From positions 62,001 to 126,000 of IMG/VR virus record IMGVR_UViG_3300047445_000186: 64,000 nt of DNA. One strand, written 5' to 3'. Position numbers and translations under genes: made by a program. Each line of letters starts with the position of its first letter. Positions within the stretch are counted from its first letter, which is position 1. Positions 23,981-63,170 of this stretch are shown piece after piece. Under the pieces are notes generated by a model that did no database searches, was not told where the DNA came from, and worked only from the letters and a program-made list of their open reading frames with translations.

Positions 23981-24049
23981 TCCAAATCTGCACCCCCTGA
24001 TCTTTCCTTGTCCGCGTACAATGAGGTACGCAATAAACAAGGAAAGAAA

Positions 24050-25321
24050 ATGGTTGCAGAACTCAAAGAACACGTCAACAAGCGCTCGCTTGTCACAGCC
24101 CGTACAATCGACGGTCTGTTCCCAATTGAAGGCGCTGACGCAATCGAAGTAGCGCAAGTCGATGGCTGGAAAGTCGTCGTGAAGAAGGGCGAGTTCAACG
24201 TGAACGACCCCTGCCTGTACTTCGAAATCGACAGCTTCCTGCCTGAAGGAAATCCCGCTTGGCAGTTCCTCGTGGACAAGCAACCGAAGGTGTTCAACGG
24301 CGTGCGTGGTCACAAGCTCAGAACGATCAAGCTCCGCGGTCAGATCAGCCAAGGGTTCGTAGTTCCGTACAAGGCGTTCCCAATCGTTGTCGCGGCCGTG
24401 ACGAACGACACGACGTTCCCAGTCCCTGAAGAACTGCGCGCTGAGTTCGACAATCTCGTGTTCGGTATGCACGAGCACGAAGCTCAGCTCGACGCTCGAG
24501 ACATGGACTTCAGCGATCTGCTTGGCGTGACGAAGTGGGAAGTCCAGCTTGCGGCGAATCTGCAAGGTCAAGCCGAAGGTCTGTTCCCGTCGTTCATCCA
24601 GAAGACGGACCAAGAGCGTTGCCAGAATCTGAAGAACGAAATCTTTGGGTACGAGGACCTCGTGATTCCGGCTAATGAGCACCGTCCAGAAATCGTTCGG
24701 AGGGCCCTGGCGTCGCCTGATGACGCGTACGAGATCACGGTCAAGCTTGATGGCTCGTCGATGACGGCGTTCGGTCGTGGCGTCATTGAGCAGGACGGCG
24801 AACAGTCGCACCTGAACATCGATGTCGGCGTATGCTCGCGTAACCTGCAGCTCAAGGTCAACGAAGCGAACGCAGAAAACTCGTTCATCAAAACGTCGAC
24901 AGACTCTGGATTGCTGCAAGCGATCATGTTCTACGTGCGTGAAACTGGTGAATCGATTGCCGTTCAAGGTGAGCTCATGGGCCCGAACATCCAAGGCAAC
25001 CGTGAACAACTCACGAAGGCGGCGTTCTATCTGTTCGACGTGTACCTCATCAATGAGGGTCGGTACGCCACGCCGATCGAGCGCGGTGAAGTGTTCCGCA
25101 GGCTCGTCGAGCTTGGTGCGAAGATCGAGCACACGCCGATCAAGCACGCGAAGACAACGCTCATTGAGCTCGGCCTGAAGACGATCGACGATCTGTTGAA
25201 GTTCGCTGAAGGTCCGTCGATCAAGCACCCGATCCGCGAAGGTCTCGTGTTCAAGCGACTGGACGGCAAGTTCAGCTTCAAGGCGATCTCGAACAAGTAC
25301 CTCGAAAAAGAGAAGGACTGA
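24050..25321 (+). CDS. RNA ligase, Rnl2/DRB0094-like with N-terminal OB domain
   Basis: IEGADAIE...GWKVVVKKGEF...YFEIDSFLP...LRGQISQG N-domain; VKLDGSS, QGELMGP, FYLFDV, REGLVFK, FKAISNKYL. Confidence 0.92.
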   Translation: MVAELKEHVNKRSLVTARTIDGLFPIEGADAIEVAQVDGWKVVVKKGEFNVNDPCLYFEIDSFLPEGNPAWQFLVDKQPKVFNGVRGHKLRTIKLRGQISQGFVVPYKAFPIVVAAVTNDTTFPVPEELRAEFDNLVFGMHEHEAQLDARDMDFSDLLGVTKWEVQLAANLQGQAEGLFPSFIQKTDQERCQNLKNEIFGYEDLVIPANEHRPEIVRRALASPDDAYEITVKLDGSSMTAFGRGVIEQDGEQSHLNIDVGVCSRNLQLKVNEANAENSFIKTSTDSGLLQAIMFYVRETGESIAVQGELMGPNIQGNREQLTKAAFYLFDVYLINEGRYATPIERGEVFRRLVELGAKIEHTPIKHAKTTLIELGLKTIDDLLKFAEGPSIKHPIREGLVFKRLDGKFSFKAISNKYLEKEKD

Positions 25322-37762: not shown

Positions 37763-38932
37763 ATGGCATCGAAAACAGACGTCACCGTCTACATCGGAAG
37801 GTTCACGCCTTTCCACTTGGGTCACGCGCATGTTCTGCGCCAAGCCCTGAACAACTCCAAGCTCGTCATCGTTCTGCTCGGTTCGGCTTATCTGGCGCGA
37901 TCACTGAAGAACCCCTTCACGTTCATCGAACGTCGCAGGATCATCGAAAGCTGGGTCTCGGCCGAGATCATGGCCGGCACGATTCCGCACGACGCCGAAA
38001 TCCACTTCGCTCCGCTCCGCGACTTCACGTACAACAACGCTCTCTGGATCCGCAATGTCCAGGAGAAGGTGAAGACGATCGTTCGCGATGTGGCACTCCG
38101 TACGAATCAAATCCTGACCGACATCCGTGTCACTGGTTCGGATCGCGATGAATCGACCTGGTACCTGAACGCGTTCCCGCAATGGAAGAAGGCGCTGGTC
38201 GAAACGTTCCGTCACGACGGTACCGGCGATCTGAGTGCGACCGAAGTTCGTGAACTCCTGTTCTCCGGCCGGGCCATGGAGCCGGGCGTTGCTGAACGCC
38301 TGATCGCGATGCTCCCACGTACGACCTATGAATGGCTAGTCAAGTTCGCCGACTCACCAGAACACTTCCGGTTGGCACGGTGGTACGAACAGAACAGAGC
38401 CTATAAGGAAGCCTGGTCGGTTGCACCGTACGCCCCGATCTTCACCACGGTCGATGCCGTGATCGTTCAGTCCGGTCACATTCTCGTCGTCGAGCGCGGA
38501 GCTGAACCGGGCATGGGGCTCTGGGCTCTGCCTGGCGGATTCCTGAACACGAATGAACGGCTGCGTGATGGCGTTGTCCGTGAAGTTCTGGAAGAAACTG
38601 GGCTGCGCCTCGCTGACGGCAAGAAGGCGAAGGAGATCACGGAAGACATTCTGAAGAATTGCATTCGTGAACAGGAAGTGTTCGACGCTCCTGATCGCTC
38701 GATGCGTGGTCGAACCATCACGCACGCGTTCTTCATTCGTCTCGATGACACGAAGCCGCTCCCCAAGGTGAAGGGACAGAACGCGCCACTGCACGAAACT
38801 GGTGGTGTCGCCGAAGTCGAGACTGCGAAGGCGTTCTGGCTGCCAATCAACGAAGCTCTGAGCCGCTCGGAGATGTGGTTCGAAGATCACCACGCAATCA
38901 TCGAGACGATGATTGGCGGAAAGGACCTGTAA
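37763..38932 (+). CDS. nadM: bifunctional NMN adenylyltransferase / ADP-ribose pyrophosphatase (NadM-NUDIX)
   Basis: IGRFTPFHLGH (HxGH), SLKNPFT, SATEVR; Nudix box LPGGFLNTNERLRDGVVREVLEETGL; FEDHH. Confidence 0.95.
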   Translation: MASKTDVTVYIGRFTPFHLGHAHVLRQALNNSKLVIVLLGSAYLARSLKNPFTFIERRRIIESWVSAEIMAGTIPHDAEIHFAPLRDFTYNNALWIRNVQEKVKTIVRDVALRTNQILTDIRVTGSDRDESTWYLNAFPQWKKALVETFRHDGTGDLSATEVRELLFSGRAMEPGVAERLIAMLPRTTYEWLVKFADSPEHFRLARWYEQNRAYKEAWSVAPYAPIFTTVDAVIVQSGHILVVERGAEPGMGLWALPGGFLNTNERLRDGVVREVLEETGLRLADGKKAKEITEDILKNCIREQEVFDAPDRSMRGRTITHAFFIRLDDTKPLPKVKGQNAPLHETGGVAEVETAKAFWLPINEALSRSEMWFEDHHAIIETMIGGKDL

Positions 38933-41555: not shown

Positions 41556-42782
41556 ATGTCTGGCTCTACTGTTGCAGTTATCGGTGCGAATTTTGGTGAT
41601 GAAGGCAAGGGCCTGATCACTGACTTCGAAACCCGTCGTCTGAATGCGAAGCTTGTCGCGCGCATGAATGGTGGAGCTCAGGCAGGACACACGGTAGTCA
41701 CCACCGAAGGAGACCGGCATGTGTTCGGTCACTTCGGTGCTGGCACCTTTGCAGGTGCTGACACGTACCTGCCAGCCACCTTCCTTGTGAACCCTCTCGT
41801 TCACGAAAAGGAAAAGAATACCCTTGGCGCGAGAGCTACAAGAACGTTCGTACATCCACATGCACCTGTCTCGACGATCTGGGACATGGCATTGAATGCG
41901 ATCGTTGAGCTCTCGCGCGATAAGCCACATGGCTCTTGCGGCCTTGGCATCAATGAGACCGTGACTCGCACTATTGCTGGGCACGGTATTCTGTTCAACA
42001 TGCTGAAGACTCAGACGGTCGAGCACGTTGCTGGTGTGATGAGCCTGATTCGTCGTGACTGGATTCCAGAACGGATCAAGAGCTTCGGCATCGATTTCAA
42101 TTCGCATAGTGATCAGCTGCGTGCAAAGCTTGAGCCGATGCTGAACGTGCTGAATGACCTCGACTTCATGCGACACGCCCAGCGGCTTGTCGATGCAGCC
42201 GCTGGTCTTGAACTCGGTCAGCCGACGATTGAAGGCAATCTTGTGATTGAAGGTGCGCAAGGCTTGCAGCTCGATCAAGACCTCGGAATCTTTCCGCACG
42301 TGACTCGTTCGATGACGGGCCTCGGATCGGCGATCGTGACTGCGAATGAACTTGGCCGCAAGAGTGTTCAGCCCGTGTACATCACGCGTTGCTACCTGAC
42401 TCGCCATGGTGCAGGGCCACTCGAGCACGAGAAGATTCGATTCACTGAGCAGAAATTGTTCGATCAGACTAATCAACCGAATCAATGGCAAGGTACGCTT
42501 CGGTACGCACCACTGAATCTCGTGCAGCTTGAAGACTTCATTCGCCGCGACTGTGTGCGTGGTGCTGAATTCGCCAGCCGCATGAAGATCGAACTGGAGC
42601 AGCCAACGATCGCGGTCACGTGCCTCGATCAGGTCGGCTCTGAGATCTCGATGTTCGGCGCAGATCAAGAATTAGTCACGATCCCGACAGAGAATGCAGC
42701 TAGCTACATTGCAGACACGTTGAAACTCAGGTTGAGCCACTCGTCCCGCGGCCCATCTGCTGCTGACGTGCAGTTCATGTAA
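41556..42782 (+). CDS. purA: adenylosuccinate synthetase-like protein (divergent PurA)
   Basis: GANFGDEGKG, NGGAQAGHT, EGAQGLQLD, PHVTRS, YLTRHGAGP. Confidence 0.88.
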   Translation: MSGSTVAVIGANFGDEGKGLITDFETRRLNAKLVARMNGGAQAGHTVVTTEGDRHVFGHFGAGTFAGADTYLPATFLVNPLVHEKEKNTLGARATRTFVHPHAPVSTIWDMALNAIVELSRDKPHGSCGLGINETVTRTIAGHGILFNMLKTQTVEHVAGVMSLIRRDWIPERIKSFGIDFNSHSDQLRAKLEPMLNVLNDLDFMRHAQRLVDAAAGLELGQPTIEGNLVIEGAQGLQLDQDLGIFPHVTRSMTGLGSAIVTANELGRKSVQPVYITRCYLTRHGAGPLEHEKIRFTEQKLFDQTNQPNQWQGTLRYAPLNLVQLEDFIRRDCVRGAEFASRMKIELEQPTIAVTCLDQVGSEISMFGADQELVTIPTENAASYIADTLKLRLSHSSRGPSAADVQFM

Positions 42783-42797
42783 AATTGATCTATTGAA

Positions 42798-42875
42798 GAG
42801 GTGTGCCGAAGACCTCAATGAACTTCGGCAGTGAGCGATAGACGCGAGCTAAGAAAAGTAGAGGAGCTCTACCAA
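42798..42875 (+). promoter_or_regulatory. structured leader of NAMPT gene, leader motif copy 2
   Basis: GAGGT/ACCTC and TGCCGAAG/CTTCGGCA overlapping pairings; GAGCGATAGACGC; GTAGAG-GAG-CTCTAC hairpin covering the SD. Confidence 0.65.
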
Positions 42876-44342
42876 ATGTCACAAAGAACCGCAGCAGAAT
42901 TCCTGGCCCCGAAGGCCACGGACATCAAGTACACGCACGACGATCAGCTGATCATCAGCCTGATCTGCCGTACCGACTCGTACAAGTTCGGTCACCCGTT
43001 CGCATACCCCGAAGAAGTGAAGGGGATGTCCTCGTACGGCGAAGCCCGTGTCGATCGGAAGACCACGATCATTCCGTTCGGAATGCAGATCCTCGTGAAG
43101 AAGTTCCTCACGCAACGGATCACCATGGCGCACATCGACGCTGCTGAAGCATTCGCGCTCGCTCACTTCGGCCGCCCTCTGTTCGCTCGCGCTGCCTGGG
43201 AAAAGGTCGTGCAAGTGTACGACGGCTACCTGCCCCTGATCATCCGCGCAGTTCGCGAAGGTACGAAGATCACCGGTGGCCTGCCGATCTACAGCGTGAC
43301 CTGCCTCGACGAAGACCTGTTCTGGATGTCGAGCGGTATCGAAACGCTGATCCTTCGCGGTATCTGGTACCCGACGTCGATCGCGACGATGGACAACTCG
43401 ATCAAGCGCGAAATCAAGCACTACTACGAAATCACCGGCGCAGACATGAATCTGCTCCCGTTCTCGCTGCACGACTTCGGTGGTCGCGGTGTGACGAGCT
43501 CGGAGCAAGCTGAAATCGGTGGTGCAGCGCACACCGTGAACTTCATGGGTTCCGACACGGTCGAAGGCGTCCTTGCGGCGAACTTCTACTACAAGCACGC
43601 AATGACTGCGTTCTCGGTGTTCGCAACCGAGCACAGCATCGAATGTTCGTTCGGTGGTGGTCGTGAAGACGCACTGCGGTACATCCGCCAAGTGCTGAAG
43701 AACGCGCTCCCTGGCTCGATCGTTTCGTTCGTGCTTGACGGGTACGACGTGTACCGTGAAGCCGAGCTGGCCTGCACCGTGCTGCACGACGAAATCCTGG
43801 CGACGAACGCGAAGGTCGTGTTCCGCCCTGACAGCGGCGACATGATGGAAGTCGTTCCCCGCATCCTGCTCCTGCAAGCGAAGTGCTTCGGCACTGTGAA
43901 GAACTCGAAGGGTTTCCTGAAGGTGAACACCGTCGGCATTCTGCAAGGCGATGGCGTTGATCACCTTGCGATCACCTCGCTGCTTGGCAAGCTCCTGACC
44001 ATGGGGTTCTCTGCTGACAACGTCGTGTTCGGCTCGGGTGGTGCTCTCCTGCAGAAGGTCAATCGCGACACATTCAAGTTCGCACAGAAGGCCTCCGCTG
44101 TTCTCGTGAATGGCGTGTGGAAGGGTATCGCGAAGGATCCGATCACCGACCCTGGCAAGAAGTCGAAGGAAGGCATCCTCACTACCGTGCGTTCGCGCAT
44201 GACTGGTGAACTGATGGCTGCTCGCCTCGATCTGGCGCCGCTGAACGAAGAATTCGAGGACCTCCATGTCCTGGTTTACTACTACGGTCAGCTGTACAAC
44301 GAGACCACGATGGACGAAGTCCGCGAACGCGCAGCAGTCTGA
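42876..44342 (+). CDS. nadV: nicotinamide phosphoribosyltransferase
   Basis: TDSYKFGH, LHDFGGRG, ATEHS, SFVLDGYD, VFRPDSGD, LQGDG, FGSGGALLQKVNRDTFKFAQK, KDPITDPGKKSK. Confidence 0.96.
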   Translation: MSQRTAAEFLAPKATDIKYTHDDQLIISLICRTDSYKFGHPFAYPEEVKGMSSYGEARVDRKTTIIPFGMQILVKKFLTQRITMAHIDAAEAFALAHFGRPLFARAAWEKVVQVYDGYLPLIIRAVREGTKITGGLPIYSVTCLDEDLFWMSSGIETLILRGIWYPTSIATMDNSIKREIKHYYEITGADMNLLPFSLHDFGGRGVTSSEQAEIGGAAHTVNFMGSDTVEGVLAANFYYKHAMTAFSVFATEHSIECSFGGGREDALRYIRQVLKNALPGSIVSFVLDGYDVYREAELACTVLHDEILATNAKVVFRPDSGDMMEVVPRILLLQAKCFGTVKNSKGFLKVNTVGILQGDGVDHLAITSLLGKLLTMGFSADNVVFGSGGALLQKVNRDTFKFAQKASAVLVNGVWKGIAKDPITDPGKKSKEGILTTVRSRMTGELMAARLDLAPLNEEFEDLHVLVYYYGQLYNETTMDEVRERAAV

Positions 44343-47714: not shown

Positions 47715-47764
47715 TCCCGAAGATCAAGGTTCTCGAACAGACGATCTTGATCTACAATAGAAGT

Positions 47765-48040
47765 ACTGCAGCAATGCAGTGATTGCCGTAATTCGGACTG
47801 ACTTGATGGATTTTGGACGGGGGTTCGACTCCCCCCACCTCCACCAAAAGAAGCTTGATCGCAGGATTCTTCTGATGGGGGTGCCATGGTTTCGACAAGG
47901 TTACTGAGATGACGTACGCGGCAGGAGAGACGACCGACCTAATCGGCGTAAATGAAGTAAATGCTAACTCTGATAGCTTCCGTCTCGTCGCCTAAACAAC
48001 GACCCCGGTGAGGTCAGCCGCCTTATAAAGAAACGGTTAG
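47765..48040 (+). ncRNA. ssrA: circularly permuted (two-piece) tmRNA
   Basis: Acceptor piece first: GGACGGGGGTTCGACTCCCCC-CACCTCC-A-CCA ending 47846. A 30-nt spacer follows, then the coding piece GGGGGTG-CCATGGTTTCGAC from 47877. The acceptor helix pairs fully with G3-U70. Resume context GTAAAT-GCT; tag ANSDSFRLVA* at 47963-47995. TACAAT at 47753. Outer ends are approximate. Confidence 0.9.
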
Positions 48041-48090
48041 AAAATAGAAAGTTGATCAAGCCTCGGCCGAAGTCCTTTTGATTTTTCGCT

Positions 48091-49146: not shown

Positions 49147-49221
49147 GCGCCTGTAGCTCAACGTCGGAGCAGTGGATTCTAAATCTGAAGGTCGTGGGGT
49201 AGGCACCCACCAGGCGCACCA
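49147..49221 (+). tRNA. amber-decoding tRNA (anticodon CUA) with non-canonical D and T loops
   Basis: GCGCCTG/CAGGCGC acceptor, GCTC/GAGC D stem, GTGGA-TTCTAAA-TCTGA anticodon arm (CTA at 49179-49181 by canonical spacing), AGGTC variable, GTGGG-GTAGGCA-CCCAC T arm, A73, CCA; own promoter TATAATTCAC at 49133. Confidence 0.78.
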
Positions 49222-55018: not shown

Positions 55019-55094
55019 ACCCGGTTAGCTCAGTTGGTAGAGCGGCGTCATGACATGGCGTAGGTCGTTGGTTCAAACCCAACACCGGGTACCA
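55019..55094 (+). tRNA. tRNA-Val(GAC)
   Basis: ACCCGGT/ACCGGGT acceptor; loop ATGACAT; TTCAAAC T loop; CCA. Confidence 0.85.
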
Positions 55095-55303
55095 TTGGAA
55101 ATCGCTCTTGTGACATCTTCTAACATGGAAAGATTCGCGGTGAGTATCGTAAAAATGCTGGTTTCGAGATCCAGCTGTCATTCGAGTGATTCCCAATGGT
55201 AAGAAAATCCTTGTTGTGAGGGTGGAAAGCGGAACACTGGCCATTTCGGTAAATCCTTTTGGTTGCACGCAGTTTTGAGTACATTCAACAGTCAATGAGG
55301 TAT

Positions 55304-55392
55304 GGGCCCGCTGTCCTTGGAGAGATAAGCTCGCTGTAAACGAGTGGCACGCAAATAAGTCTGAACTGGTTCGATTCCAGTCGGTCCCACCA
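55304..55392 (+). tRNA. tRNA-Tyr(GTA)
   Basis: GCTCG-CTGTAAA-CGAGT; long variable arm; CCA. Confidence 0.8.
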
Positions 55393-55400
55393 AATAACTT

Positions 55401-55483
55401 TCGCTTCAACCGTTGTGGTAACGGCCCGACTTTGAATCGGTGGTCACGAAAACTGATGAGGTTCGATTCCTCGTAGCGATCCA
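55401..55483 (+). tRNA. atypical tRNA-Gln(TTG)
   Basis: CCCGA-CTTTGAA-TCGGT; extended variable region; TTCGATT T loop; CCA. Confidence 0.65.
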
Positions 55484-55499
55484 AATTGAAGAACACCTT

Positions 55500-55586
55500 G
55501 CCCAGGTGGCGGAATTGGTAGACGCGCAGCGTTGAGGTCGCTGTGTCCGAAAGGACGTGGAGGTTCGAGTCCTCTCCTGGGCACCA
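55500..55586 (+). tRNA. tRNA-Leu(GAG)
   Basis: CAGCG-TTGAGGT-CGCTG; canonical long variable arm; CCA. Confidence 0.95.
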
Positions 55587-55681
55587 TGAAAATAAGAACA
55601 AAAACAAACACGGAACGATGTTGTCCTCGCAACATCGGGAATGTGAGGTCGCAGAAGCGATCTAAAACCGAGGCGTACTAA

Positions 55682-55774
55682 CCGTACTGATGAGCTGGTG
55701 AAACTCCAGCGAAACGCACTGAGAAAAGTTCATCGAGGTAAGAACTCTGAACGTAGTACCAGTAGCGTATACGG
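55682..55774 (+). ncRNA. type I hammerhead ribozyme
   Basis: Stem I CCGTA/TACGG; core CTGATGA; stem II GCTGG/CCAGC; GAAA; stem III ACGC/GCGT; GUA cleavage triplet with the cut after 55769. Confidence 0.85.
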
Positions 55775-55889
55775 GACAATGTGGTGAAGTTAAATGCAGT
55801 GAGTGCACTTACTGTATGATGCACCTTTGGTCAGCTTACATGCTGGTCAAGTTCAAGATCGGACCTTGATCGTTGCACCCGACCAATTT

Positions 55890-55965
55890 GGGCTTAAGCA
55901 TTGGGGTTGCGGGAACGCCTTGCAAGTGTTCTGTCAGTGGAGTTCGATTCTCCCTAGGTCCACCA
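55890..55965 (+). tRNA. tRNA-Cys(GCA)
   Basis: AACGC-CTTGCAA-GTGTT; CCA. Confidence 0.8.
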
Positions 55966-56024
55966 GAATGTTTCTCATTGTAGACAATGTACACAATGAG
56001 AAACAGTTTAAGAATGCACTTTGT

Positions 56025-56098
56025 CAGAGTGTGGTGACAAGTGGACGTCGACCGGGTTTGGAACCTGGAATATGCCGGTTCGAGGCCGGCCACTCTGA
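56025..56098 (+). tRNA. tRNA-Pro(TGG)-like, no encoded CCA, inside a 20-bp inverted repeat
   Basis: CCGGG-TTTGGAA-CCTGG; flanks 56012-56031 and 56091-56110 are perfect complements. Confidence 0.6.
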
Positions 56099-56113
56099 CA
56101 AAGTGCATTCGAT

Positions 56114-56190
56114 CGGAGATTAGCGCAGTCTGGTAGCGCATCTGCTTTGGGAGCAGAGGGTCAGAGGTTCGAATCCTCTATCTCCGACCA
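56114..56190 (+). tRNA. tRNA-Pro(TGG)
   Basis: Canonical CGGAGAT acceptor; TCTGC-TTTGGGA-GCAGA; CCA. Confidence 0.95.
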
Positions 56191-56340
56191 AATATCTCTC
56201 CATGACACGGGGAGTACAATGTGATAAGTTCCGTGTCCTTAGTCGGTGAAAGTTCGCGATAGCGCCGGAAACGGTTTGACTCGAGCAAGATGAAGATCGC
56301 TAGATCTTGCCGGGAAGCACTTGGTTATGCTTCAGCTATT

Positions 56341-56414
56341 TTGGTAGTAGCATGTGTGGGATATGCAGCCCTTTGGTGGGAAGATCACAGGTTCAAATCC
56401 TGTCTACTGATCCA
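56341..56414 (+). tRNA. degenerate tRNA-like gene (Pro TGG-like anticodon region)
   Basis: Acceptor, D and T arms and CCA present; anticodon stem poorly paired. Confidence 0.45.
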
Positions 56415-56531
56415 GGTAAGTCTCAGTCCTTCTAATGACTGAGTGGTGGAACGTCGCGTTGAAACCAATGCGGCCCCAGAACGTGAAATTGAATGTGGTC
56501 TGAACATCATTTGTTTACCACAGGAGAAATC

Positions 56532-56810
56532 ATGTTCAAAGTTCAATACGATGTCAATGTTCCAGGCGCATGGCGCGGTGCTCGGACTCTGTCCCCAGGC
56601 GATCTCGGCGAAAACCCTTCGGGGTGGACGATCACGGGTGTTGTCCATGAGGATTATTTCGAGTGGGTGAATTACTTTGAAGCGAAGCATCCTACCTTCG
56701 GGTGGGTACGTGGAGACTTCGAGTCGGAAATCCAGGCAAAATCTAAGAAAGCGTTCGCGCACTTCTTAGAGAATCATCCGCCAAATGAGTGGGATTACGG
56801 CGATATCTGA
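56532..56810 (+). CDS. conserved hypothetical protein in tRNA array
   Basis: AGGAG SD; GWTITG...EDYFEWVN...GDFE...WDYGDI. Confidence 0.8.
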   Translation: MFKVQYDVNVPGAWRGARTLSPGDLGENPSGWTITGVVHEDYFEWVNYFEAKHPTFGWVRGDFESEIQAKSKKAFAHFLENHPPNEWDYGDI

Positions 56811-56852
56811 AAGAACTCTCCTCGGTATGAGATAAAAAGGCCGTGAAATTCT

Positions 56853-56928
56853 GGGGGATTAGCTCATCTGGGAGAGCGGCAGCTTTGCAAGCTGTAGGTG
56901 ATCGGTTCGAGTCCGATATCCTCCACCA
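56853..56928 (+). tRNA. tRNA-Ala(TGC)
   Basis: G3-U70; GCAGC-TTTGCAA-GCTGT; CCA. Confidence 0.95.
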
Positions 56929-57146
56929 AATTTGATCCTAACGGCGCTAATAACCGAGATAACGCCGTGAAGAACATGAACTGCTGGCAAAGTCGATAAA
57001 TTCCTTCTCAGGATGTGCAGTTGTTCAGGGTCAATTCGTTTATTGGTTGTAGGTGCTGCCCCACGTAAAGTACAGAACCTTCAGAATTCCGTGATCAGAT
57101 ACGGCCGCCTAACAAGCGGCAAGAGTCCTCTGATCGCGATCCAATT

Positions 57147-57220
57147 TCGACGCTAGTGTAGTAGATGCACGCCGTCCATGAGTGGCGGAAGGAAAGGTGC
57201 AAATCCTTTGTGTTGATCCA
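57147..57220 (+). tRNA. atypical tRNA-like gene (anticodon position TGA, short variable loop)
   Basis: Full cloverleaf spacing and CCA, but A33 and T loop TGCAAAT. Confidence 0.5.
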
Positions 57221-57225
57221 TCTTT

Positions 57226-57297
57226 GCGGGTGGTTTGTGGAATACGTTTAGCCTTCCAAGCTGAAAGATGCAGGTTCGAACCCTGTCGCCCGCTCCA
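57226..57297 (+). tRNA. tRNA-Gly(TCC)
   Basis: TTAGC-CTTCCAA-GCTGA; U73; CCA. Confidence 0.9.
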
Positions 57298-57384
57298 TAT
57301 CTGAACGCTCTTGCGGTAAAGAGTGCAGCGCCTGCAGCGTGTCTTCTCCCTCGAGGACAAGTGCATTCGAGAGCGTTCAGATAT

Positions 57385-57470
57385 GGGTATTCGTCAGAGC
57401 TGGAGAGCTGAAGCGGGCTGTAACCCCGTTCCTTATAGGTGAGCAGGTTCGATTCCTGCAGTACCCACCA
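57385..57470 (+). tRNA. tRNA-Tyr(GTA), second copy
   Basis: GCGGG-CTGTAAC-CCCGT; variable arm; CCA. Confidence 0.88.
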
Positions 57471-57488
57471 GAATTTTAGGAGTTCAAA

Positions 57489-57752
57489 TTGCGTTGTAAA
57501 CCAGGTATCCTCGCCGAGATTATCGGCGGTGTAGATGGTCTGAACAAAGGAAAGATCGTTGAAGTCGTTGCGTTCGCAGGAATGCACGTTGAATTCGGTC
57601 CAATCTGGGAAATCAGGTCACGCACTCTCGATCTCGTTTCTGAGTACGGTGGAATGTCTAAGGACGCGCACTGTGCTGACATTTGGTTGAAGCCGATTCC
57701 AACGGATCCGCTCCCACCAAAGGTGAAGACAAAAGACCTCGAGCTCGTATGA
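57489..57752 (+). CDS. hypothetical protein
   Basis: AGGAG SD with TTG start; WLKPI motif; ATGA overlap. Confidence 0.7.
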   Translation: MRCKPGILAEIIGGVDGLNKGKIVEVVAFAGMHVEFGPIWEIRSRTLDLVSEYGGMSKDAHCADIWLKPIPTDPLPPKVKTKDLELV

Positions 57753-57979
57753 TCGTGTGTCTCTGCTACCGAGTCTCTTCGAATGAGATTCGCGACGCAG
57801 CGAAGTTCTTGAACGCGAAGACCATTGAGGAACTCCAATGTGGTCTCGAAGTCTGCCAGAATTGTGAAGTGTGCAAGCCGTACATTGAAGCGATTCTGCA
57901 GGAAACGGTTCCTTCCGTATCGCATGGGTTAAGCGATGGTGATCACGATACCACAATCGAGACGCGGCTACTGTGTTAA
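57749..57979 (+). CDS. bfd: Bfd-like [2Fe-2S] protein
   Basis: MIVCLCYRVSSNEIRDA...VCQNCEVCKPYIEAIL, the Bfd CxC...CxxC pattern. Confidence 0.75.
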   Translation: MIVCLCYRVSSNEIRDAAKFLNAKTIEELQCGLEVCQNCEVCKPYIEAILQETVPSVSHGLSDGDHDTTIETRLLC

Positions 57980-58140
57980 TGTGGTGAGATGTACTCTAGA
58001 GTCTCGGCCATGAACGTTCCTGTTCATTGGAGATACGAATATTCCCTGAGTTGGTTTATGAGAAAGTTCACGTTAACAACTGCTCAAAGCTGGTAGGTAA
58101 GCTACAAGTCGTAATGTTGGGAAACGTCGCGCAGATATAT

Positions 58141-58216
58141 GCCCTTGTAGCTCAGTGGTAGAGCACCCGCCTTGTAAGCGGTAGGTCGCGAGTTCAATTC
58201 TCCGCCAGGGGCACCA
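58141..58216 (+). tRNA. tRNA-Thr(TGT)
   Basis: CCCGC-CTTGTAA-GCGGT; CCA. Confidence 0.9.
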
Positions 58217-58224
58217 TGAATTAT

Positions 58225-58304
58225 TGCGGGGTAGGGGAGTCTGGTCGTCCCCGCCAGTCTCATAAGCTGGAGATCGTGCGGTTCAAATCCCACCCCCGCA
58301 ACCA
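58225..58304 (+). tRNA. tRNA-Met(CAT), initiator-like acceptor
   Basis: GCGGGG acceptor; loop CTCATAA; CCA. Confidence 0.8.
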
Positions 58305-58349
58305 ATTCCCTGAGTTGATGTTGAACTCTAATACAAGAAATCATCACCT

Positions 58350-58426
58350 GCCCTGTTACGCTAATTGGTAGTGCGGACAGTTTCAAACACTGTTGGTTCT
58401 CGGTTCGAATCCGAGATGGGGCACCA
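58350..58426 (+). tRNA. tRNA-Leu(CAA) with short variable loop
   Basis: ACAGT-TTCAAAC-ACTGT; 5-nt variable loop; A73; CCA. Confidence 0.78.
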
Positions 58427-58431
58427 GATTT

Positions 58432-58508
58432 GCGGTCGTGGTGTAATTGGTAAACGCCTCCGGTTCAGAACCGTAGTCCTGTGGGTTCGAGTCCCACCGA
58501 CCGCACCA
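58432..58508 (+). tRNA. tRNA-Leu(CAG) with short variable loop
   Basis: TCCGG-TTCAGAA-CCGTA; short variable loop; A73; CCA. Confidence 0.8.
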
Positions 58509-58642
58509 GAACGAAACGTGCAGCAATGCACCGATATCGCCGAACGTGGTAGGCGTAGAGCATGGGCTAAATCGATGATGCAGCATGCCGCTAAGTAACA
58601 ACCAACTCTTGTTGATTATCAGACTAAATCATCAGAATTCAT

Positions 58643-58752
58643 GCGCGTGTTGCGGAACGGCACACGCTGTCGGTAAAGAGCCGACGACCCAGACGTTCGA
58701 CTCGTCTTAAACTATGGAGGGGATGTAGGTTCGAATCCTACCGCGCGCACCA
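58643..58752 (+). ncRNA. Leu-like tRNA with an extra T-arm-like hairpin
   Basis: GCGCGTG/CGCGCGC acceptor, Leu-type D arm, GTCGG-TAAAGAG-CCGAC, extra AGACG-TTCGACT-CGTCT, then GTAGG-TTCGAAT-CCTAC, A, CCA. Confidence 0.6.
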
Positions 58753-58874
58753 GGTTTTGATCGATGCCTTAATTGGGTATCTGTGTTCCAGACGGATTGT
58801 TCTTCGGTCTGGACGTGAAGTACTCGCTCCCACAGAGTAAGAGAACATGAGGGGAGTCTCGATCAAATTAGTTT

Positions 58875-59005
58875 GGAGTCGTGGTGTAATGGTAGCACAC
58901 GTACAAACTCGATTTCTCCATTTTGTCGCTTCGGCGACCGCACTGAAATTGATTATCTCCCGTAACGAGCGGGGACCGCGGTTCGAATCCCGGTAGACTC
59001 CACCA
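58875..59005 (+). ncRNA. tRNA-like RNA with large insertion replacing the anticodon arm
   Basis: GGAGTC/GACTCC acceptor, GGTGTAATGGTAGCAC D arm, GGTTCGAATCC T arm, ACCA; 131 nt total. Confidence 0.65.
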
Positions 59006-59010
59006 AATAT

Positions 59011-59086
59011 AGGCATGACGCTGAAATGGTTTCAGGCCGCGGTCACATCGCGGATTTAGGGAGTTCGATTCTCCACTTGCCCACCA
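59011..59086 (+). tRNA. tRNA-Val(CAC)
   Basis: CCGCG-GTCACAT-CGCGG; imperfect acceptor; CCA. Confidence 0.7.
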
Positions 59087-59096
59087 TTGTTTTGAG

Positions 59097-59244
59097 AATG
59101 TTTATCAGAAAGTCTAACCGCTGACAGTTGGTTATCTACTTTTACTGCTTAAAAAATCCGGAGATGGTTCAATTCCTCTCATGGTCTGCTGGTGCCGGAG
59201 ACCAATGCCCAACTTCACTTTTGTTCGGCGTTCTGATAAACATT
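59097..59244 (+). ncRNA. candidate structured RNA closed by a 14-bp inverted repeat
   Basis: AATGTTTATCAGAA/TTCTGATAAACATT; internal hairpins, including a GGTTCAATTCC T-loop-like element. Confidence 0.45.
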
Positions 59245-59257
59245 TTGAAAGAGTATC

Positions 59258-59491
59258 ATGAAAATGGTAACCCGCGACGATTATCCTAATTTGGATCCGG
59301 AAGTTTCAGTGCACAATTGCACTGCAGAAAATCCGATGCCTCCAGAGGTTGGAGATCGCGCTCAAGAGCTGAAGCAGCTTTGGGTACATCATGATACTGA
59401 AGAAATTTGGGAGAGCGATTCAGGCCGCTTTATGCGCGTTCGCTGTCTGCACTGCAAGTACGAGTACACAATCGACTTCGGTGATGATTGA
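59258..59491 (+). CDS. small zinc-ribbon-like protein
   Basis: HNC...WVH...RCLHCKY. Confidence 0.65.
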   Translation: MKMVTRDDYPNLDPEVSVHNCTAENPMPPEVGDRAQELKQLWVHHDTEEIWESDSGRFMRVRCLHCKYEYTIDFGDD

Positions 59492-59496
59492 GATTT

Positions 59497-59571
59497 GGGT
59501 CCTTAGCACAGCGGTAGTGCGGCTCCTTTACACGGAGTAGGTCGTAGGTTCGATCCCTACAGGACCCACCA
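59497..59571 (+). tRNA. tRNA-Val(TAC)
   Basis: GCTCC-TTTACAC-GGAGT; CCA. Confidence 0.93.
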
Positions 59572-59628
59572 AGTTTTGTCACCCTACCCAAGGGGTCCAT
59601 GAGAGTGGTTGGAAGCATCATGGCAAGT

Positions 59629-59703
59629 GTTTACGTAGCTCAGTGGAAAGAGCGCCATCCATCGCGTGGTGGAGACGCAGGTTCGAATCCTGTCGTAGTT
59701 CCG
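59629..59703 (+). tRNA. degenerate tRNA (anticodon position ATC), no CCA
   Basis: Canonical D and T arms; loop CCATCGC; weak acceptor. Confidence 0.45.
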
Positions 59704-59809
59704 TGACAAATTATTTTGCTGCTTGGTAAGACAAGCTAACGGAGGATGGGAAGTACGTCGCCATGAAGGCGATACGGCGGATACCCCACCGGCCTTGCAG
59801 CTCCAATTT

Positions 59810-59901
59810 GGAAGATGATACCTGATGGTGACGGTGGCTCCCTGCTAAGGAGTTCGTCCGGTGATGAACCGGATTCGGTTCGATTCCGACCTCTTCCTCC
59901 A
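59810..59901 (+). tRNA. tRNA-Ser(GCT)
   Basis: GCTCC-CTGCTAA-GGAGT; long variable arm; CCA. Confidence 0.9.
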
Positions 59902-59905
59902 ATAT

Positions 59906-60015
59906 GGCGCATTGACCTGTAGTAGCGCTTAAATGCAGGGCGATATGGTATCAAGCACGAAGGCTGCTCGAGCAGCTAGAGGCAATGAGGTTCGAATCCT
60001 CCCAGTGCGCCGCCA
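59906..60015 (+). ncRNA. tRNA-like RNA with 9-bp acceptor stem
   Basis: GGCGCATTG/CAGTGCGCC, G, CCA; GAGG-TTCGAAT-CCTC T arm; CCTGTA/TGCAGG and GCTGC-TCGA-GCAGC arms. Confidence 0.6.
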
Positions 60016-60032
60016 ATTTAGTGGAGTGAGAC

Positions 60033-60338
60033 ATGAAACTGCGAAACATCATCCTCGCTCTGAAGGACCAACTGCCGCTCAGACGGCTGATCAGAAATCT
60101 TTGGAACGGTCGTGTGACTGGTCTGACGCATCCAAGAACGCACTTGAATGCGAACGGCAAACCAAAGATCATGTACAACACAAAAGCGACTGCAGTGAAA
60201 GCTGCAGCTGCGATGGCCGCGAAGCGTGGCGTACCGTTCGGAAATTGGAAATGCATGCATTGCGATGGTTTCCACATCGGCAAGAACCGATCGTACGACA
60301 ACTTCAAGGCAAATCAGAACATGGAAGAGTCTCCCTGA
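60033..60338 (+). CDS. basic hypothetical protein with CxxC
   Basis: GGAG SD; WKCMHCDGFHIG; 3' end overlaps the tRNA-Ser gene. Confidence 0.75.
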   Translation: MKLRNIILALKDQLPLRRLIRNLWNGRVTGLTHPRTHLNANGKPKIMYNTKATAVKAAAAMAAKRGVPFGNWKCMHCDGFHIGKNRSYDNFKANQNMEESP

Positions 60339-60413
60339 TGGTGATGGGGTCCGCCTCGAAAGCGGTTCTGTCCACGCGAGTGGGCAACGGTTCGATTCCG
60401 TACTCTTCCTCCA
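60323..60413 (+). tRNA. tRNA-Ser(CGA)
   Basis: TCCGC-CTCGAAA-GCGGT; long variable arm; CCA. Confidence 0.9.
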
Positions 60414-60420
60414 GAACAGT

Positions 60421-60475
60421 GGGTGGGTTTGTGGCAAACCCGGGAATGCAGGTTCGAGTCCTGTCCCATCCACCA
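60421..60475 (+). ncRNA. 55-nt anticodon-less mini-tRNA with alanine identity elements
   Basis: GGGTGGG/CCCATCC acceptor with G3-U70, A73, CCA; GCAGG-TTCGAGT-CCTGT T arm; only 20 nt between acceptor and T arm. Confidence 0.75.
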
Positions 60476-60701
60476 ATAGTTGAGGGCCTTCGATCGCATC
60501 GAGGGCGTGGTTAGACTGCGCAGTCGGACGAAGATCGTGGCCACGGTCAATGTCCTAAAAGTTGTTTGGTATGTGAGGTTCAACTCCTCACCAACTTTAA
60601 CCACCTCATTCAATTTAAGCGGGACCGCTGGGTCAACAAGTCTGCATAAGCCGGAGGTGCTTGCACCGAAGAGAGATACAGCCCAGGTTAAAACCGCTTT
60701 T

Positions 60702-60790
60702 GGAGAGTTGTCCCTGATGGTGATGGGCACCGCTTGGAAAGCGGTTGCACTGCGAAAGCGGTGACGGTTCGATTCCGTAGCTCTCCTCCA
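60702..60790 (+). tRNA. tRNA-Ser(GGA)
   Basis: ACCGC-TTGGAAA-GCGGT; long variable arm; CCA. Confidence 0.92.
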
Positions 60791-60797
60791 GAATTCC

Positions 60798-60874
60798 GCG
60801 CGAATGGCCGAATCGGTATAGGCAAGAGGCTTAAACCCTCTTTGTTGTCGGTTCGAGTCCGACTTCGCGCACCA
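60798..60874 (+). tRNA. tRNA-Leu(TAA) with short variable loop
   Basis: AGAGG-CTTAAAC-CCTCT; short variable loop; A73; CCA. Confidence 0.82.
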
Positions 60875-60879
60875 AACAT

Positions 60880-60962
60880 GGCCTCGTGGATAGTGCAAAT
60901 CGGTACAGCTACCGGGTTTAGAACCCGGACCATTGTGAGTTCGAGTCTCACCGAGGCTACCA
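60880..60962 (+). tRNA. tRNA-Leu(TAG) with short variable loop
   Basis: CCGGG-TTTAGAA-CCCGG; 6-nt variable loop; enlarged D loop; CCA. Confidence 0.8.
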
Positions 60963-60971
60963 TGAATTTTT

Positions 60972-61047
<76 letters not shown>

Positions 61048-61052
61048 GATAT

Positions 61053-61138
61053 GCGTGAGGTCGTGGGACCTATGGCAAAGCGCGAATCGGCCGAGAACGC
61101 GCCGAAGTCGCTTGGTTCGACTCCAAGCTCCCGCTCCA
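61053..61138 (+). ncRNA. Gly-like tRNA variant with expanded anticodon loop
   Basis: GCG acceptor start, U73, CCA, canonical T arm; GCGCG-AATCGGCCGAGAA-CGCGC arm. Confidence 0.55.
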
Positions 61139-61159
61139 ATATTGGTGTTCTAAATTTAT

Positions 61160-61249
61160 GGAGACGTGGCAGAGTGGCCTATCGCTCCGGCCTTGAAAAC
61201 CGGCGACCCTTAACCGGGTCCGTGAGTTCGAATCTCACCGTCTCCGCCA
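61160..61249 (+). tRNA. tRNA-Ser(TGA)
   Basis: Loop CTTGAAA; long variable arm; G73; CCA. Confidence 0.93.
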
Positions 61250-61254
61250 TCTAT

Positions 61255-61343
61255 GTTCAGTGTGGTGAGCAATTGTCGAATTGGTACAGCCCCTTGCGTT
61301 TAGCGAGGCCACTTTGCGGGTTCGAATCCCGTCACTGAACTCC
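61255..61343 (+). ncRNA. degenerate tRNA-like gene with 8-bp acceptor
   Basis: GTTCAGTG/CACTGAAC; GCGGG-TTCGAAT-CCCGT; CCTTG-CGTTTAG-CGAGG; no CCA. Confidence 0.45.
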
Positions 61344-62228: not shown

Positions 62229-63170
62229 ATGGCTGAAATCACAGAACAGGTTCGAGCGAAAATTCAAGCAGATGCCACGGCCCGGCTGAAGGAGCTTCGT
62301 GCTCGGAACGTAGGCTCGGAGGAACCAGGGGCCCTCTGTGGCACCGTTCCAACCAAGCCCAATTGGCTAATCATCGGCAGCACGGCGGCGTACCGGTGGT
62401 TCCCGGACATGCGGAAACCGGCCGATCTCGATCTGCTCACGCCAGCAACGATCAAGACCTCGAGCACCCAGCTCTGCTTCGTAGACACGCAGTGGCACGC
62501 AGCAGCCGAGCATGTTCTGTCCGTGAATCGCGACCCAGTGTTCGCGGATCCAGACGTGCTGTACACGCTGAAGGTCTCGCACGCGCACTGGAACATCAAG
62601 TGGCAGAAGACGATGGACGACATCGAAATTCTCCGCCGCAAAGGGTGCAAGCTGAACTTCAAGTTGTACGAACATCTCGTCGAAGTCTGGACAGAGATTC
62701 ACGGCAAGAAGCACGTGAACATGAACCAGTCGATGGACACGTTCTTCAAGGATGCCGTTCAGCGCGAGTACGATCACGAGTACCTCCATGAGCTCGTCGC
62801 GTTCAACGGTCGACCAATGCACGAGCGCCTTCGTCCTGACATCGGTACCGCATGGTGTGACCAGAATCTGTTCAATGCTCTGACCCCTGATGAACAGGCG
62901 CAAACAGTCCTAGAAGAGATAATGGCTACTGCTATCGAGCGTTCCCGTCTGAACAATACGGCCCGTAAGAGCCAGAAGTTCGCGGCGATGAACAGAGCAC
63001 ACTTCCTGCTTTGCACATCCATGACCAAGGGATGGTTCGCGCGGTACCTGATTTTGAATCGATTTAACTTACTTTATGAGCGAAAAGAAGAATGGCTGAC
63101 GATAATGAACAAAGCGCTTTCGGTGATTTCGACAGCACCGACTCGAGCGTGTACACCTCGAAGCAATTGA
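62229..63170 (+). CDS. nucleotidyltransferase-like phage protein
   Basis: IIGSTAAYRWFPDMRKPADLDLL (hGS...DhD), YTLKVSHAHW, YDHEYLHELVA; the true start may lie downstream. Confidence 0.7.
   Translation: MAEITEQVRAKIQADATARLKELRARNVGSEEPGALCGTVPTKPNWLIIGSTAAYRWFPDMRKPADLDLLTPATIKTSSTQLCFVDTQWHAAAEHVLSVNRDPVFADPDVLYTLKVSHAHWNIKWQKTMDDIEILRRKGCKLNFKLYEHLVEVWTEIHGKKHVNMNQSMDTFFKDAVQREYDHEYLHELVAFNGRPMHERLRPDIGTAWCDQNLFNALTPDEQAQTVLEEIMATAIERSRLNNTARKSQKFAAMNRAHFLLCTSMTKGWFARYLILNRFNLLYERKEEWLTIMNKALSVISTAPTRACTPRSN

Follow-up and report, generated by a model that had tools for sequence, protein, structure and literature searches.

An anticodon-less 55-nt tRNA-like element with alanine identity marks in the tRNA array of a phage

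Mycobacteriophage DS6A encodes little beyond the tRNA-like domain (TLD) of transfer-messenger RNA (tmRNA), and other TLD-only relatives are the plastid forms of about 65 nucleotides (nt) and the tag-less tmRNAs of jakobid mitochondria (PMC4131195, PMC11915505). A molecule similar to that of DS6A is described as a strong inhibitor of tmRNA, perhaps by titration of SmpB (PMC4131195, PMC11915505). The DS6A RNA was located at L168:28478-28556. Here we describe a 55-nt element (the 55-mer) that also has an acceptor stem and a T arm and no anticodon arm. It lies in a 64-kb window, which is the whole stretch of DNA analysed and a piece of the ~331-kb phage contig IMGVR_UViG_3300047445_000186.

Small alanine acceptors are not new. 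Francklyn and Schimmel reportedly found in 1989 that a synthetic alanine minihelix, consisting of just the acceptor and the T arm, is alanylated and forms a minimal substrate. Alanine minihelices are also said to inhibit the growth of E. coli (Hipps and Schimmel, 1995). Nature also shrinks tRNAs. The arm-less mitochondrial tRNAs of nematodes and mites are natural genes reduced to about 45-60 nt by the loss of D or T arms. To our knowledge these always retain the anticodon arm and decode.

The features of the element are collected in Table 1. An earlier note on this DNA, made from the letters alone, had given its length and coordinates, and direct reading confirms both. It also confirms the basic plan: acceptor and T arm, an encoded CCA, and between the 5’ acceptor strand and the T arm only 20 nt, where an anticodon arm with a 7-nt loop does not fit. 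The acceptor stem has 7 of 7 pairs (G1-C72, G2-C71, G3.T70 and T4-A69, followed by three G-C pairs). The T stem has 5 of 5, around a canonical 7-nt T loop, TTCGAGT. Both arms had been called perfect, which holds as long as wobble pairs are counted; the closing pair of the T stem is G.T. What resembles a D arm is merely a 4-pair hairpin with a TGG loop, or a 7-pair extended form of it.

The full alanine identity set, G1-C72, G2-C71, G3.U70 and A73, is in the sequence; G3-U70 and A73 had been pointed out in the earlier note. This is the set conserved in tRNA-Ala (PMC9976931). The claim that the RNA cannot decode is supported by the missing anticodon arm. As to the marks of pseudo-tRNAs, no disabling stem mismatches are found (12/12 retained pairs are intact), while the element is not conserved among relatives.

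The usual tools do not report the element. ARAGORN makes no call there, and an Rfam scan of 9.5 kb, with E up to 10, lists nothing at the site. If 86 nt around the element are scanned alone, the Rfam tRNA model (RF00005) gives 22.4 bits, compared to a gathering threshold of 29, and treats the D and anticodon arms as deletions. The mascRNA model (RF01684) reaches 13 bits against a threshold of 42.5. The 55-mer is tRNA-derived, yet no tRNA by the usual criteria.

How easily such a pattern arises by chance can be counted. The scan used here asks for a TTCRANN loop, a 5/5 T stem, a 7/7 acceptor stem and NCCA within a total of 40-65 nt. In the real window this yields the 55-mer, plus one alternative register within the tRNA-like gene at 56341-56414. 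Dinucleotide shuffles gave no match in 200 versions of the 64-kb window, and one match in 2000 versions of the 6.35-kb array.

This bears on the explanation that there is no RNA gene here at all: the match could be accidental, it could be a piece of host tRNA or tmRNA that serves as the core of an attachment site, or it could belong to a coding gene. Mechanically called open reading frames (ORFs) do overlap the element on both strands, and its fold energy is unremarkable compared to shuffles (z = −0.92). These ORFs, however, also traverse the neighbouring tRNA genes and are not credible, and none of the 200 window shuffles reproduces the pattern. An attachment core has no need of both acceptor strands, yet both are there. 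The 25-nt 3’ half of the element finds no exact match when 185,579 species of bacteria and archaea are searched, with one genome for each. The non-RNA explanation is essentially excluded.

The surroundings are those of a tRNA gene. The array spans ~6.3 kb (about 55019-61343), with 24 tRNAs called by ARAGORN. The element starts 7 nt past the CCA of tRNA-Ser(CGA), on the array strand. Like most of its neighbours it has both a T at −1 and an encoded CCA. Spacing, strand, T and CCA together support a tRNA-derived gene. A scan for promoters and terminators near the element found nothing that exceeds the shuffle background, so it is probably within a polycistronic transcript. At least six malformed tRNA-like genes are found elsewhere in the same array.

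Alanine acceptors are not in short supply in this phage. It has two ordinary tRNA-Ala(UGC) genes and a tmRNA of its own, with a predicted tag of ANSDSFRLVA (ARAGORN), which is the other G3.U70 acceptor without anticodon in the genome. This tmRNA is of the betaproteobacterial permuted type, which points to a betaproteobacterial host.

The fold is less simple than the anatomy. The TTTG-TGG-CAAA hairpin described in the earlier note is present, but the overall fold proposed there (7-pair acceptor, 4-pair hairpin and T arm) is not the one of minimum energy, at −14.9 versus −20.4 kcal/mol. In the minimum-energy fold, positions 5-21 form GGGTTTG-TGG-CAAACCC, and G22-24 displace G5-7 as the partners of C45-47. 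Ensemble probabilities are 0.87 for G22-24:C45-47, about 0.1 for G5-7:C45-47 and about 0.6 for pairs 1-4. In either fold the acceptor and T arms stack to 12 pairs, the 3’ strand is unbroken, and G1-C72, G2-C71, G3.U70 and U4-A69 are intact. In the favoured fold, the 7-pair hairpin leaves the 5’ strand after pair 4 and interrupts the acceptor helix. This means that alanine charging is plausible, but no given.

Exact and degenerate pattern scans of IMG/VR and metagenomes find the 55-nt form in just two IMG/VR contigs. These are 100% identical over 20.9 kb, and hence offer no information on microdiversity. Among close phage genomes in GenBank, none covers the site; only the neighbouring small ORF finds a match, in Ralstonia phage RsoM2USA, and the tRNA array of that phage has no mini element. 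Viral contigs hold at least about 115 alanine-type elements directly after a CCA-encoding tRNA (T loop TTCGATT), and among the matches listed these measure 72-79 nt, with four exceptions of 50, 55 (the window element), 67 and 68 nt.

Some matches were tried and set aside. Many other hits of the pattern scans were normal tRNA-Ala genes in which the match began at an internal GGG, and others belonged to permuted tmRNAs (L124). Both kinds were dropped on acceptor pairing and ARAGORN calls. Six bacterial matches to the degenerate pattern were without acceptor pairing.

Related contigs were compared using the small ORF at 60033-60338, the DUF7275 gene at 62229-63170 and the distinctive tRNA-Ser genes as synteny anchors. 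Counterparts of tRNA-Ser(CGA), with the same anticodon, are found at L006:7031-7117, L047 about 1997-1911 (−), L170:3678-3764 and L290:5316-5404. In L006, a 336-kb contig identical to L029 here, the small ORF is 81% identical to that of the window. Nine nt past its tRNA-Ser(CGA) lies a 76-nt gene (L006:7127-7202), GGGTCAT...ATGATCC-A-CCA. This 76-mer has G3.T70, TT at positions 8-9 and the T loop TTCGAGT. Its D arm is normal, and its anticodon stem carries a 6-nt loop, ATTTGT. ARAGORN calls it ‘tRNA-??? (tt)’, and the Rfam tRNA model gives it 23.5 bits. Its minimum-energy fold is a cloverleaf, in which the anticodon arm zips up to 6 pairs and a UUUG loop. L288 and L289, from a strain about 96-98% identical to L006, carry the same 76-mer (L288:3794-3869) with two changes that are neutral for the structure: one in the D loop, and one T-stem U-A that became U.G.

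Other relatives lack the gene. In L047 what comes right after tRNA-Ser(CGA) is the element that trails the 76-mer in L006, and in L170 (a 349-kb contig) there is no alanine-type gene after tRNA-Ser(CGA) either. In L290 and L291, which have the Ser tRNAs most similar to those of the window, the whole 288-nt segment between the Ser genes is missing, and tRNA-Ser(CGA) and tRNA-Ser(GGA) are 7 nt apart. The slot after tRNA-Ser(CGA) holds a non-decoding alanine-type tRNA-like gene in two lineages, of 55 and 76 nt, and is without one in three. By the earlier note, its idea would fail if relatives had a full tRNA-Ala here whose arm was recently lost by deletion. Half of this was found. There is a 76-nt cloverleaf at the exact slot, but it has no usable 7-nt anticodon loop, and three relatives are empty.

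The empty slots also matter for a humbler explanation. Bacterial RNase P recognises the acceptor/T stack, a U at −1 and CCA. The element has all of these, is probably polycistronic with no promoter or terminator found adjacent to it, and weakly resembles mascRNA (13 bits). It might be a processing signal, that is, a minimal substrate for RNase P and 3’-end enzymes that separates tRNA-Ser(CGA) from the RNA at 60508-60614, with the product being discarded. Yet the flanking tRNAs already give processing sites 7 nt upstream, and L047, L170 and L290/L291 do without the element. Alanine identity marks are needless for such a role, and the mascRNA score is far under 42.5 bits. We consider this explanation improbable.

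The 55-mer and the 76-mer can be compared over acceptor, T arm and ACCA, which is 35 nt. There 24 positions are identical, and all 11 differences are in stems. Five pairs in which both partners differ, namely acceptor pairs 5-7 and two of the T stem, account for ten of these. The remaining one is a G.U versus a G-C. The compensatory changes were counted by eye, as the MAFFT alignment splits the acceptor strand. Such differences mean that the helices were kept along the path that joins the two genes. Ordinary tRNA pairs of the window phage and L006 likewise keep their helices, and are just 69-87% identical. The two genes match in their acceptor features, in the T loop and in the TT at positions 8-9. 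The case for their orthology comes from position and shared features rather than from overall identity.

The interior tells a different story. The D block of the 55-mer, TTTGTGGCAAAC, agrees in 10/12 positions with TTTGTGGAATAC of the phage’s own tRNA-Gly(UCC), and its T stem agrees in 10/10 positions with that at 57270-57286 of the same gene (18/21 for the whole T block). In an alternative alignment, the outer four pairs of the extended hairpin of the 55-mer, GGGT/ACCC, fall on the D stem of the 76-mer, GGCT/AGCC, and one pair is compensatory. These similarities suggest that the 55-mer is mosaic in origin, with an interior closer to tRNA-Gly(UCC). It could have arisen when a Gly(UCC)-like body lost ~17 nt in a single deletion, or when a body like the 76-mer went through two to three deletions.

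Anatomy, context, patchy distribution and mosaic similarity are observed, and the reading we favour builds on them. With about even confidence, we take the 55-mer to be a lineage-specific, truncated and non-decoding gene of the tRNA family, probably processed, possibly alanylated, and with no dedicated role. Internal deletion, or recombination among members of the array, would have stripped a tRNA-family gene with an alanine-type acceptor stem of its anticodon arm and of most of its D arm. The gene retains what processing enzymes look for: the 12-pair acceptor/T stack, the canonical T loop, the U at −1 and the encoded CCA. Since the features read by RNase P, the 3’ trimming enzymes and alanyl-tRNA synthetase (AlaRS) are still there, the element is probably processed and possibly charged. 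Most likely it would be transcribed along with its neighbours, after which RNase P and 3’ trimming would yield a small stable RNA. Host AlaRS may alanylate this RNA via G3.U70 and A73. The RNA cannot decode.

The 55-mer would then be a by-product of a fast-rearranging array, specific to one lineage and most likely without a dedicated role. The six or more malformed array genes, together with the homing-endonuclease-like ORFs carried by relatives, fit a high rearrangement rate. Given that two tRNA-Ala(UGC) genes and a tmRNA are already present, a third alanine acceptor is redundant.

Several things weigh against this. All twelve stem pairs are intact, as are the T loop and the CCA, which is unexpected for a long-dead pseudogene. 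The stem differences from the 76-mer are compensatory, and the helices have been maintained. The 76-mer likewise does not decode, and is kept in two strains nevertheless. Two non-decoding forms with alanine marks hint at selection on the acceptor end. In addition, orthology by position is no proof of descent.

The points on stems and on the 76-mer also favour a functional RNA: a non-decoding alanine acceptor that mimics tRNA-Ala or tmRNA, is processed, charged by AlaRS, and titrates AlaRS, EF-Tu or SmpB. It could modulate host translation or trans-translation, by analogy with the TLD-only tmRNA of DS6A and with alanine minihelices. We regard this as possible, but on the unlikely side. The 55-mer does have the full alanine identity set (as defined in PMC9976931) plus CCA, its stems are intact with compensatory differences from the 76-mer, and the 76-mer, kept in two strains, also lacks a usable anticodon loop. 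There is precedent in phages in the TLD-only RNAs described as inhibiting tmRNA (PMC4131195, PMC11915505). A covarying TLD-only family of 63-66 nt exists in marine phage-like contigs. The reported inhibition of E. coli growth by alanine minihelices also fits.

On the other side, the 55-mer is confined to one lineage, three relatives lack it, and in its favoured fold the acceptor helix is broken after pair 4. The phage also has a full tmRNA of its own, which an inhibitor of trans-translation would oppose.

The resemblance to tmRNA itself does not go very deep. In a tmRNA the acceptor strand is followed by the TLD block (T)GG-TTCGAC. The phage’s own tmRNA carries this block as GGTTTCGAC, and alignments show it in all verified TLD-only RNAs. 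The 55-mer has TTTGTGGCAAAC there instead. The earlier suggestion of an mRNA-free, tmRNA-like acceptor stands in so far as DS6A is a phage precedent, and is weakened by the missing GG-TTCGAC signature. Rfam places tRNA above the tmRNA models of the clan at the 55-mer. The tmRNA_permuted model gives it 7.8 bits, compared to 44-49 bits (tmRNA) for true TLD-only RNAs. A custom covariance model of TLD-only RNAs, made from the marine family described below, does score the 55-mer at 34.9 bits, the top match of the window. The model is circular, as the pattern that supplied its training set came from the 55-mer. It is also too narrow, with just 10 bits for DS6A itself, and its alignment forces a loopless hairpin. 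This result was not counted. Membership of the 55-mer in the tmRNA-derived class is not supported by these sequence comparisons, though it may act in a similar way.

The TLD-only RNAs of 63-66 nt are worth describing in their own right. These ‘mini-tmRNAs’ occur in AT-rich marine phage-like contigs and have no reading frame. Loci include L008:395-457(−), L011:632-697(−), L015:1369-1433(−) and L058:8793-8854(−), with ~15 more in L012-L041. They match the Rfam tmRNA model end to end with 44-49 bits. They share the TGG-TTCGAC block, a short P2 stub and a GGAT that precedes the T stem. Covariation is clear in the acceptor stem and the P2 stub: 7 of 17 pairs are changed on both sides, and 99.1% of cells are paired. 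They appear to be of the same kind as the DS6A RNA, and to be far more widespread than the literature consulted mentions.

A stronger form of the functional reading is that two jumbo-phage lineages keep, by selection, a non-decoding mimic of alanine tRNA, as a 76-nt cloverleaf with a sealed anticodon hairpin and as an arm-less 55-nt form, and that this mimic is processed, alanylated and active via its acceptor end. We think this unlikely. Such a mimic could be a competitor for AlaRS, EF-Tu or SmpB, or a sink for defence toxins directed at acceptor ends. If true, it would be a class distinct from the TLD-only RNAs derived from tmRNA.

Toxins alone might also be the target, with the 55-mer as a decoy for host defence or competition toxins that hit the tRNA acceptor end. 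Such toxins include nucleotidyl- and pyrophospho-transferases that modify CCA ends, as well as tRNases of the acceptor stem; a preference for tRNA-Ala is seen in some. It is the context that speaks for a decoy, with an RNA ligase (24008-25318), an RlaP-like protein (13064-14143), a large tRNA array and a tmRNA. An anticodon-less RNA cannot bait anticodon nucleases, yet it does display an acceptor end. Then again, any tRNA of the array is an equal sponge for acceptor-end toxins, and the 55-mer is confined to a single lineage. This explanation we hold to be very improbable. The decoy and alanine-donor roles suggested in the earlier note draw no direct support from these results.

Restriction to one lineage, the mosaic make-up, the competing fold and the already known TLD-only phage RNAs all lower the functional weight of the 55-mer, as well as its novelty. 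If it is a remnant, as we favour, it is a clean snapshot of the reshuffling and trimming of tRNA genes in jumbo-phage arrays, in which bodies become mosaic and arms disappear. The element also calls for caution in annotation, as neither ARAGORN nor Rfam thresholds report it. If it is functional, nature would have its own version of the laboratory alanine minihelix. Phages would then have a second way, starting from a tRNA, to what DS6A does with a tmRNA stub, in which a chargeable non-decoding RNA enters the aminoacylation and quality-control machinery. This would help in studying how host AlaRS, EF-Tu or trans-translation is tuned by phages.

Table 1 Coordinates, within the window, of the 55-nt element, its parts and the genes it is compared with.
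Feature	Position	Strand	Basis
Whole 55-nt anticodon-less tRNA-like element	60421..60475	+	sequence read, motif scans, Rfam tRNA 22.4 bits
Acceptor 5’ strand GGGTGGG (G1, G2, G3, U4...)	60421..60427	+	7/7 pairs with 60465-60471
Side hairpin, extended form GGGTTTG-TGG-CAAACCC, 7 pairs	60425..60441	+	folding, alignments
Side hairpin, minimal form TTTG-TGG-CAAA; putative vestigial D arm, GG in loop	60428-60438	+	
GGGAAT: G22-24, alternative partners of C45-47; AAT, linker preceding the T arm	60442..60447	+	
T arm GCAGG-TTCGAGT-CCTGT	60448..60464	+	sequence; motif scan
Acceptor 3’ strand CCCATCC (U70 = 60469), discriminator A73 (60472), encoded CCA (60473-60475)	60465..60475	+	
tRNA-Ser(CGA), upstream neighbour and synteny anchor	60323..60413	+	ARAGORN
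tRNA-Ser(GGA), downstream anchor; the 288-nt variable inter-Ser segment holds the 55-mer	60702..60790	+	ARAGORN
tRNA-Gly(UCC) without D stem; probable donor or paralogue of the 55-mer interior (D region, T arm)	57226..57297	+	
Permuted two-piece tmRNA of the same phage	47733..48086	+	Rfam beta_tmRNA 130.9 bits, tmRNA_permuted 125 bits

The array also contains some unusual neighbours. Aberrant tRNA-like genes, all on the + strand, lie at 56341-56414, 58643-58752, 59906-60015, 55304-55392, 61053-61138 and 61256-61343. One of these has a 6-nt anticodon loop (Pro UGG-like), two are 110 nt long with large inserts, and several have imperfect acceptor stems or are without CCA. The tRNA-Gly(UCC) without a D stem (GTTTGTGGAATAC; 57226-57297, +) is also kept in a relative, at L296:404-475. 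Given this conservation, it is probably a working tRNA of reduced structure.

Just 3’ of the 55-mer, at 60508-60614 (+), is a cloverleaf-like RNA of ~105 nt without CCA. It has an acceptor-like stem, GTGGTTA/TAACCAC, and an extended T-like arm with the loop TTCAACT, and no counterpart at the same place in L006 or L290. At 60880-60962 (+) is an 83-nt tRNA whose anticodon loop, TTTAGAA, gives UAG, of leucine type, and whose D region is long and atypical. This tRNA is kept across related phages (L006:8148-8231; L045:2528-2610 and 2708-2790), and ARAGORN mislabels it as Gly(ACC) or Ala(AGC). Six kb upstream of the array, an isolated tRNA at 49147-49218 (+) scores 43.4 bits with the Rfam tRNA model and has no ARAGORN call. 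Its 7-nt anticodon loop TTCTAAA gives CUA, the amber-suppressor type, and its T loop, GTAGGCA, is non-canonical.

The relatives have oddities of their own. The element that follows the 76-mer in L006 is a conserved one, TTGACAACCG-TTGATTGATGGTTATC...GGGTTCGA..CCCACCTGGGCAAG-ACCA, with a T arm and CCA and no visible 5’ acceptor strand. It is found at L006:7203-7270, L047 about 1905-1838 (−) and L007:500-585. The next gene in L006 and L047 is tRNA-like and contains ~170 nt of inserted sequence. L290 (7521-7982) and L291 (7516-7977) encode, beside the tRNA array, a protein of 153 amino acids with a release-factor RF-1 domain.

Among the proteins, the small ORF at 60033-60338 (+), inside the tRNA array, encodes 101 amino acids with a C-x2-C...H motif and matches no Pfam family. 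Its homologues fall in 116 protein clusters, many of them on contigs of 300-520 kb, and include gp165 of Ralstonia phage RsoM2USA and gp199 of Caulobacter phage CcrPW. The RNA ligase at 24008-25318 (+; PHA02142 OB-fold and RNA_ligase) and the RlaP-like nucleotidyltransferase at 13064-14143 (+) are accompanied by an NMNAT-Nudix fusion (37763-38929), NAMPT (42831-44339) and adenylosuccinate synthetase (41556-42779), all on the + strand. This is an RNA-repair and NAD-salvage kit typical of jumbo phages. Among 26 window proteins scanned with Pfam there is no AlaRS, SmpB or aminoacyl-tRNA transferase.

Compared to known systems, the 55-mer is closest in outline to the TLD-only tmRNA of the DS6A type. 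Both are small phage RNAs with a G3.U70/A73 acceptor and a T arm, and without an anticodon arm or a reading frame. Going by their sequences, both would be expected to accept alanine and not to decode. The DS6A RNA and the marine forms of 63-66 nt, however, have the TGG-TTCGAC block and the P2 stub helix, and 44-49 bits with the Rfam tmRNA model. The 55-mer has neither block nor stub, and is ranked as tRNA. It also lies inside a tRNA array and co-occurs with a full permuted tmRNA, unlike RNAs of the DS6A type.

The 76-nt gene of L006 (= L029) and L288 (= L289) shares with the 55-mer its slot, GGGT...ATCC-ACCA, the TT at 8-9, TTCGAGT, and the lack of a normal tRNA call. It differs in having a full D arm and an anticodon hairpin, and the 55-mer is 21 nt shorter. 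The mascRNA and menRNA family (RF01684) also consists of tRNA-like RNAs, of ~55-60 nt, with a reduced middle, excised by tRNA-processing enzymes. These are eukaryotic, however, and with 13 bits versus 42.5 at the 55-mer the likeness is one of analogy only.

With the alanine minihelix the 55-mer has in common the 12-pair acceptor/T stack with G3.U70 and A73. Unlike the minihelix it has 20 extra nt in the 5’ strand, as a side hairpin, and its favoured fold re-pairs three acceptor positions. It also has U4-A69, where the tRNA-Ala of E. coli has G4-C69. Like the mitochondrial tRNAs of nematodes and mites, finally, the 55-mer is a shrunken gene, but it is their reverse, as the arm that it lost is the anticodon arm.

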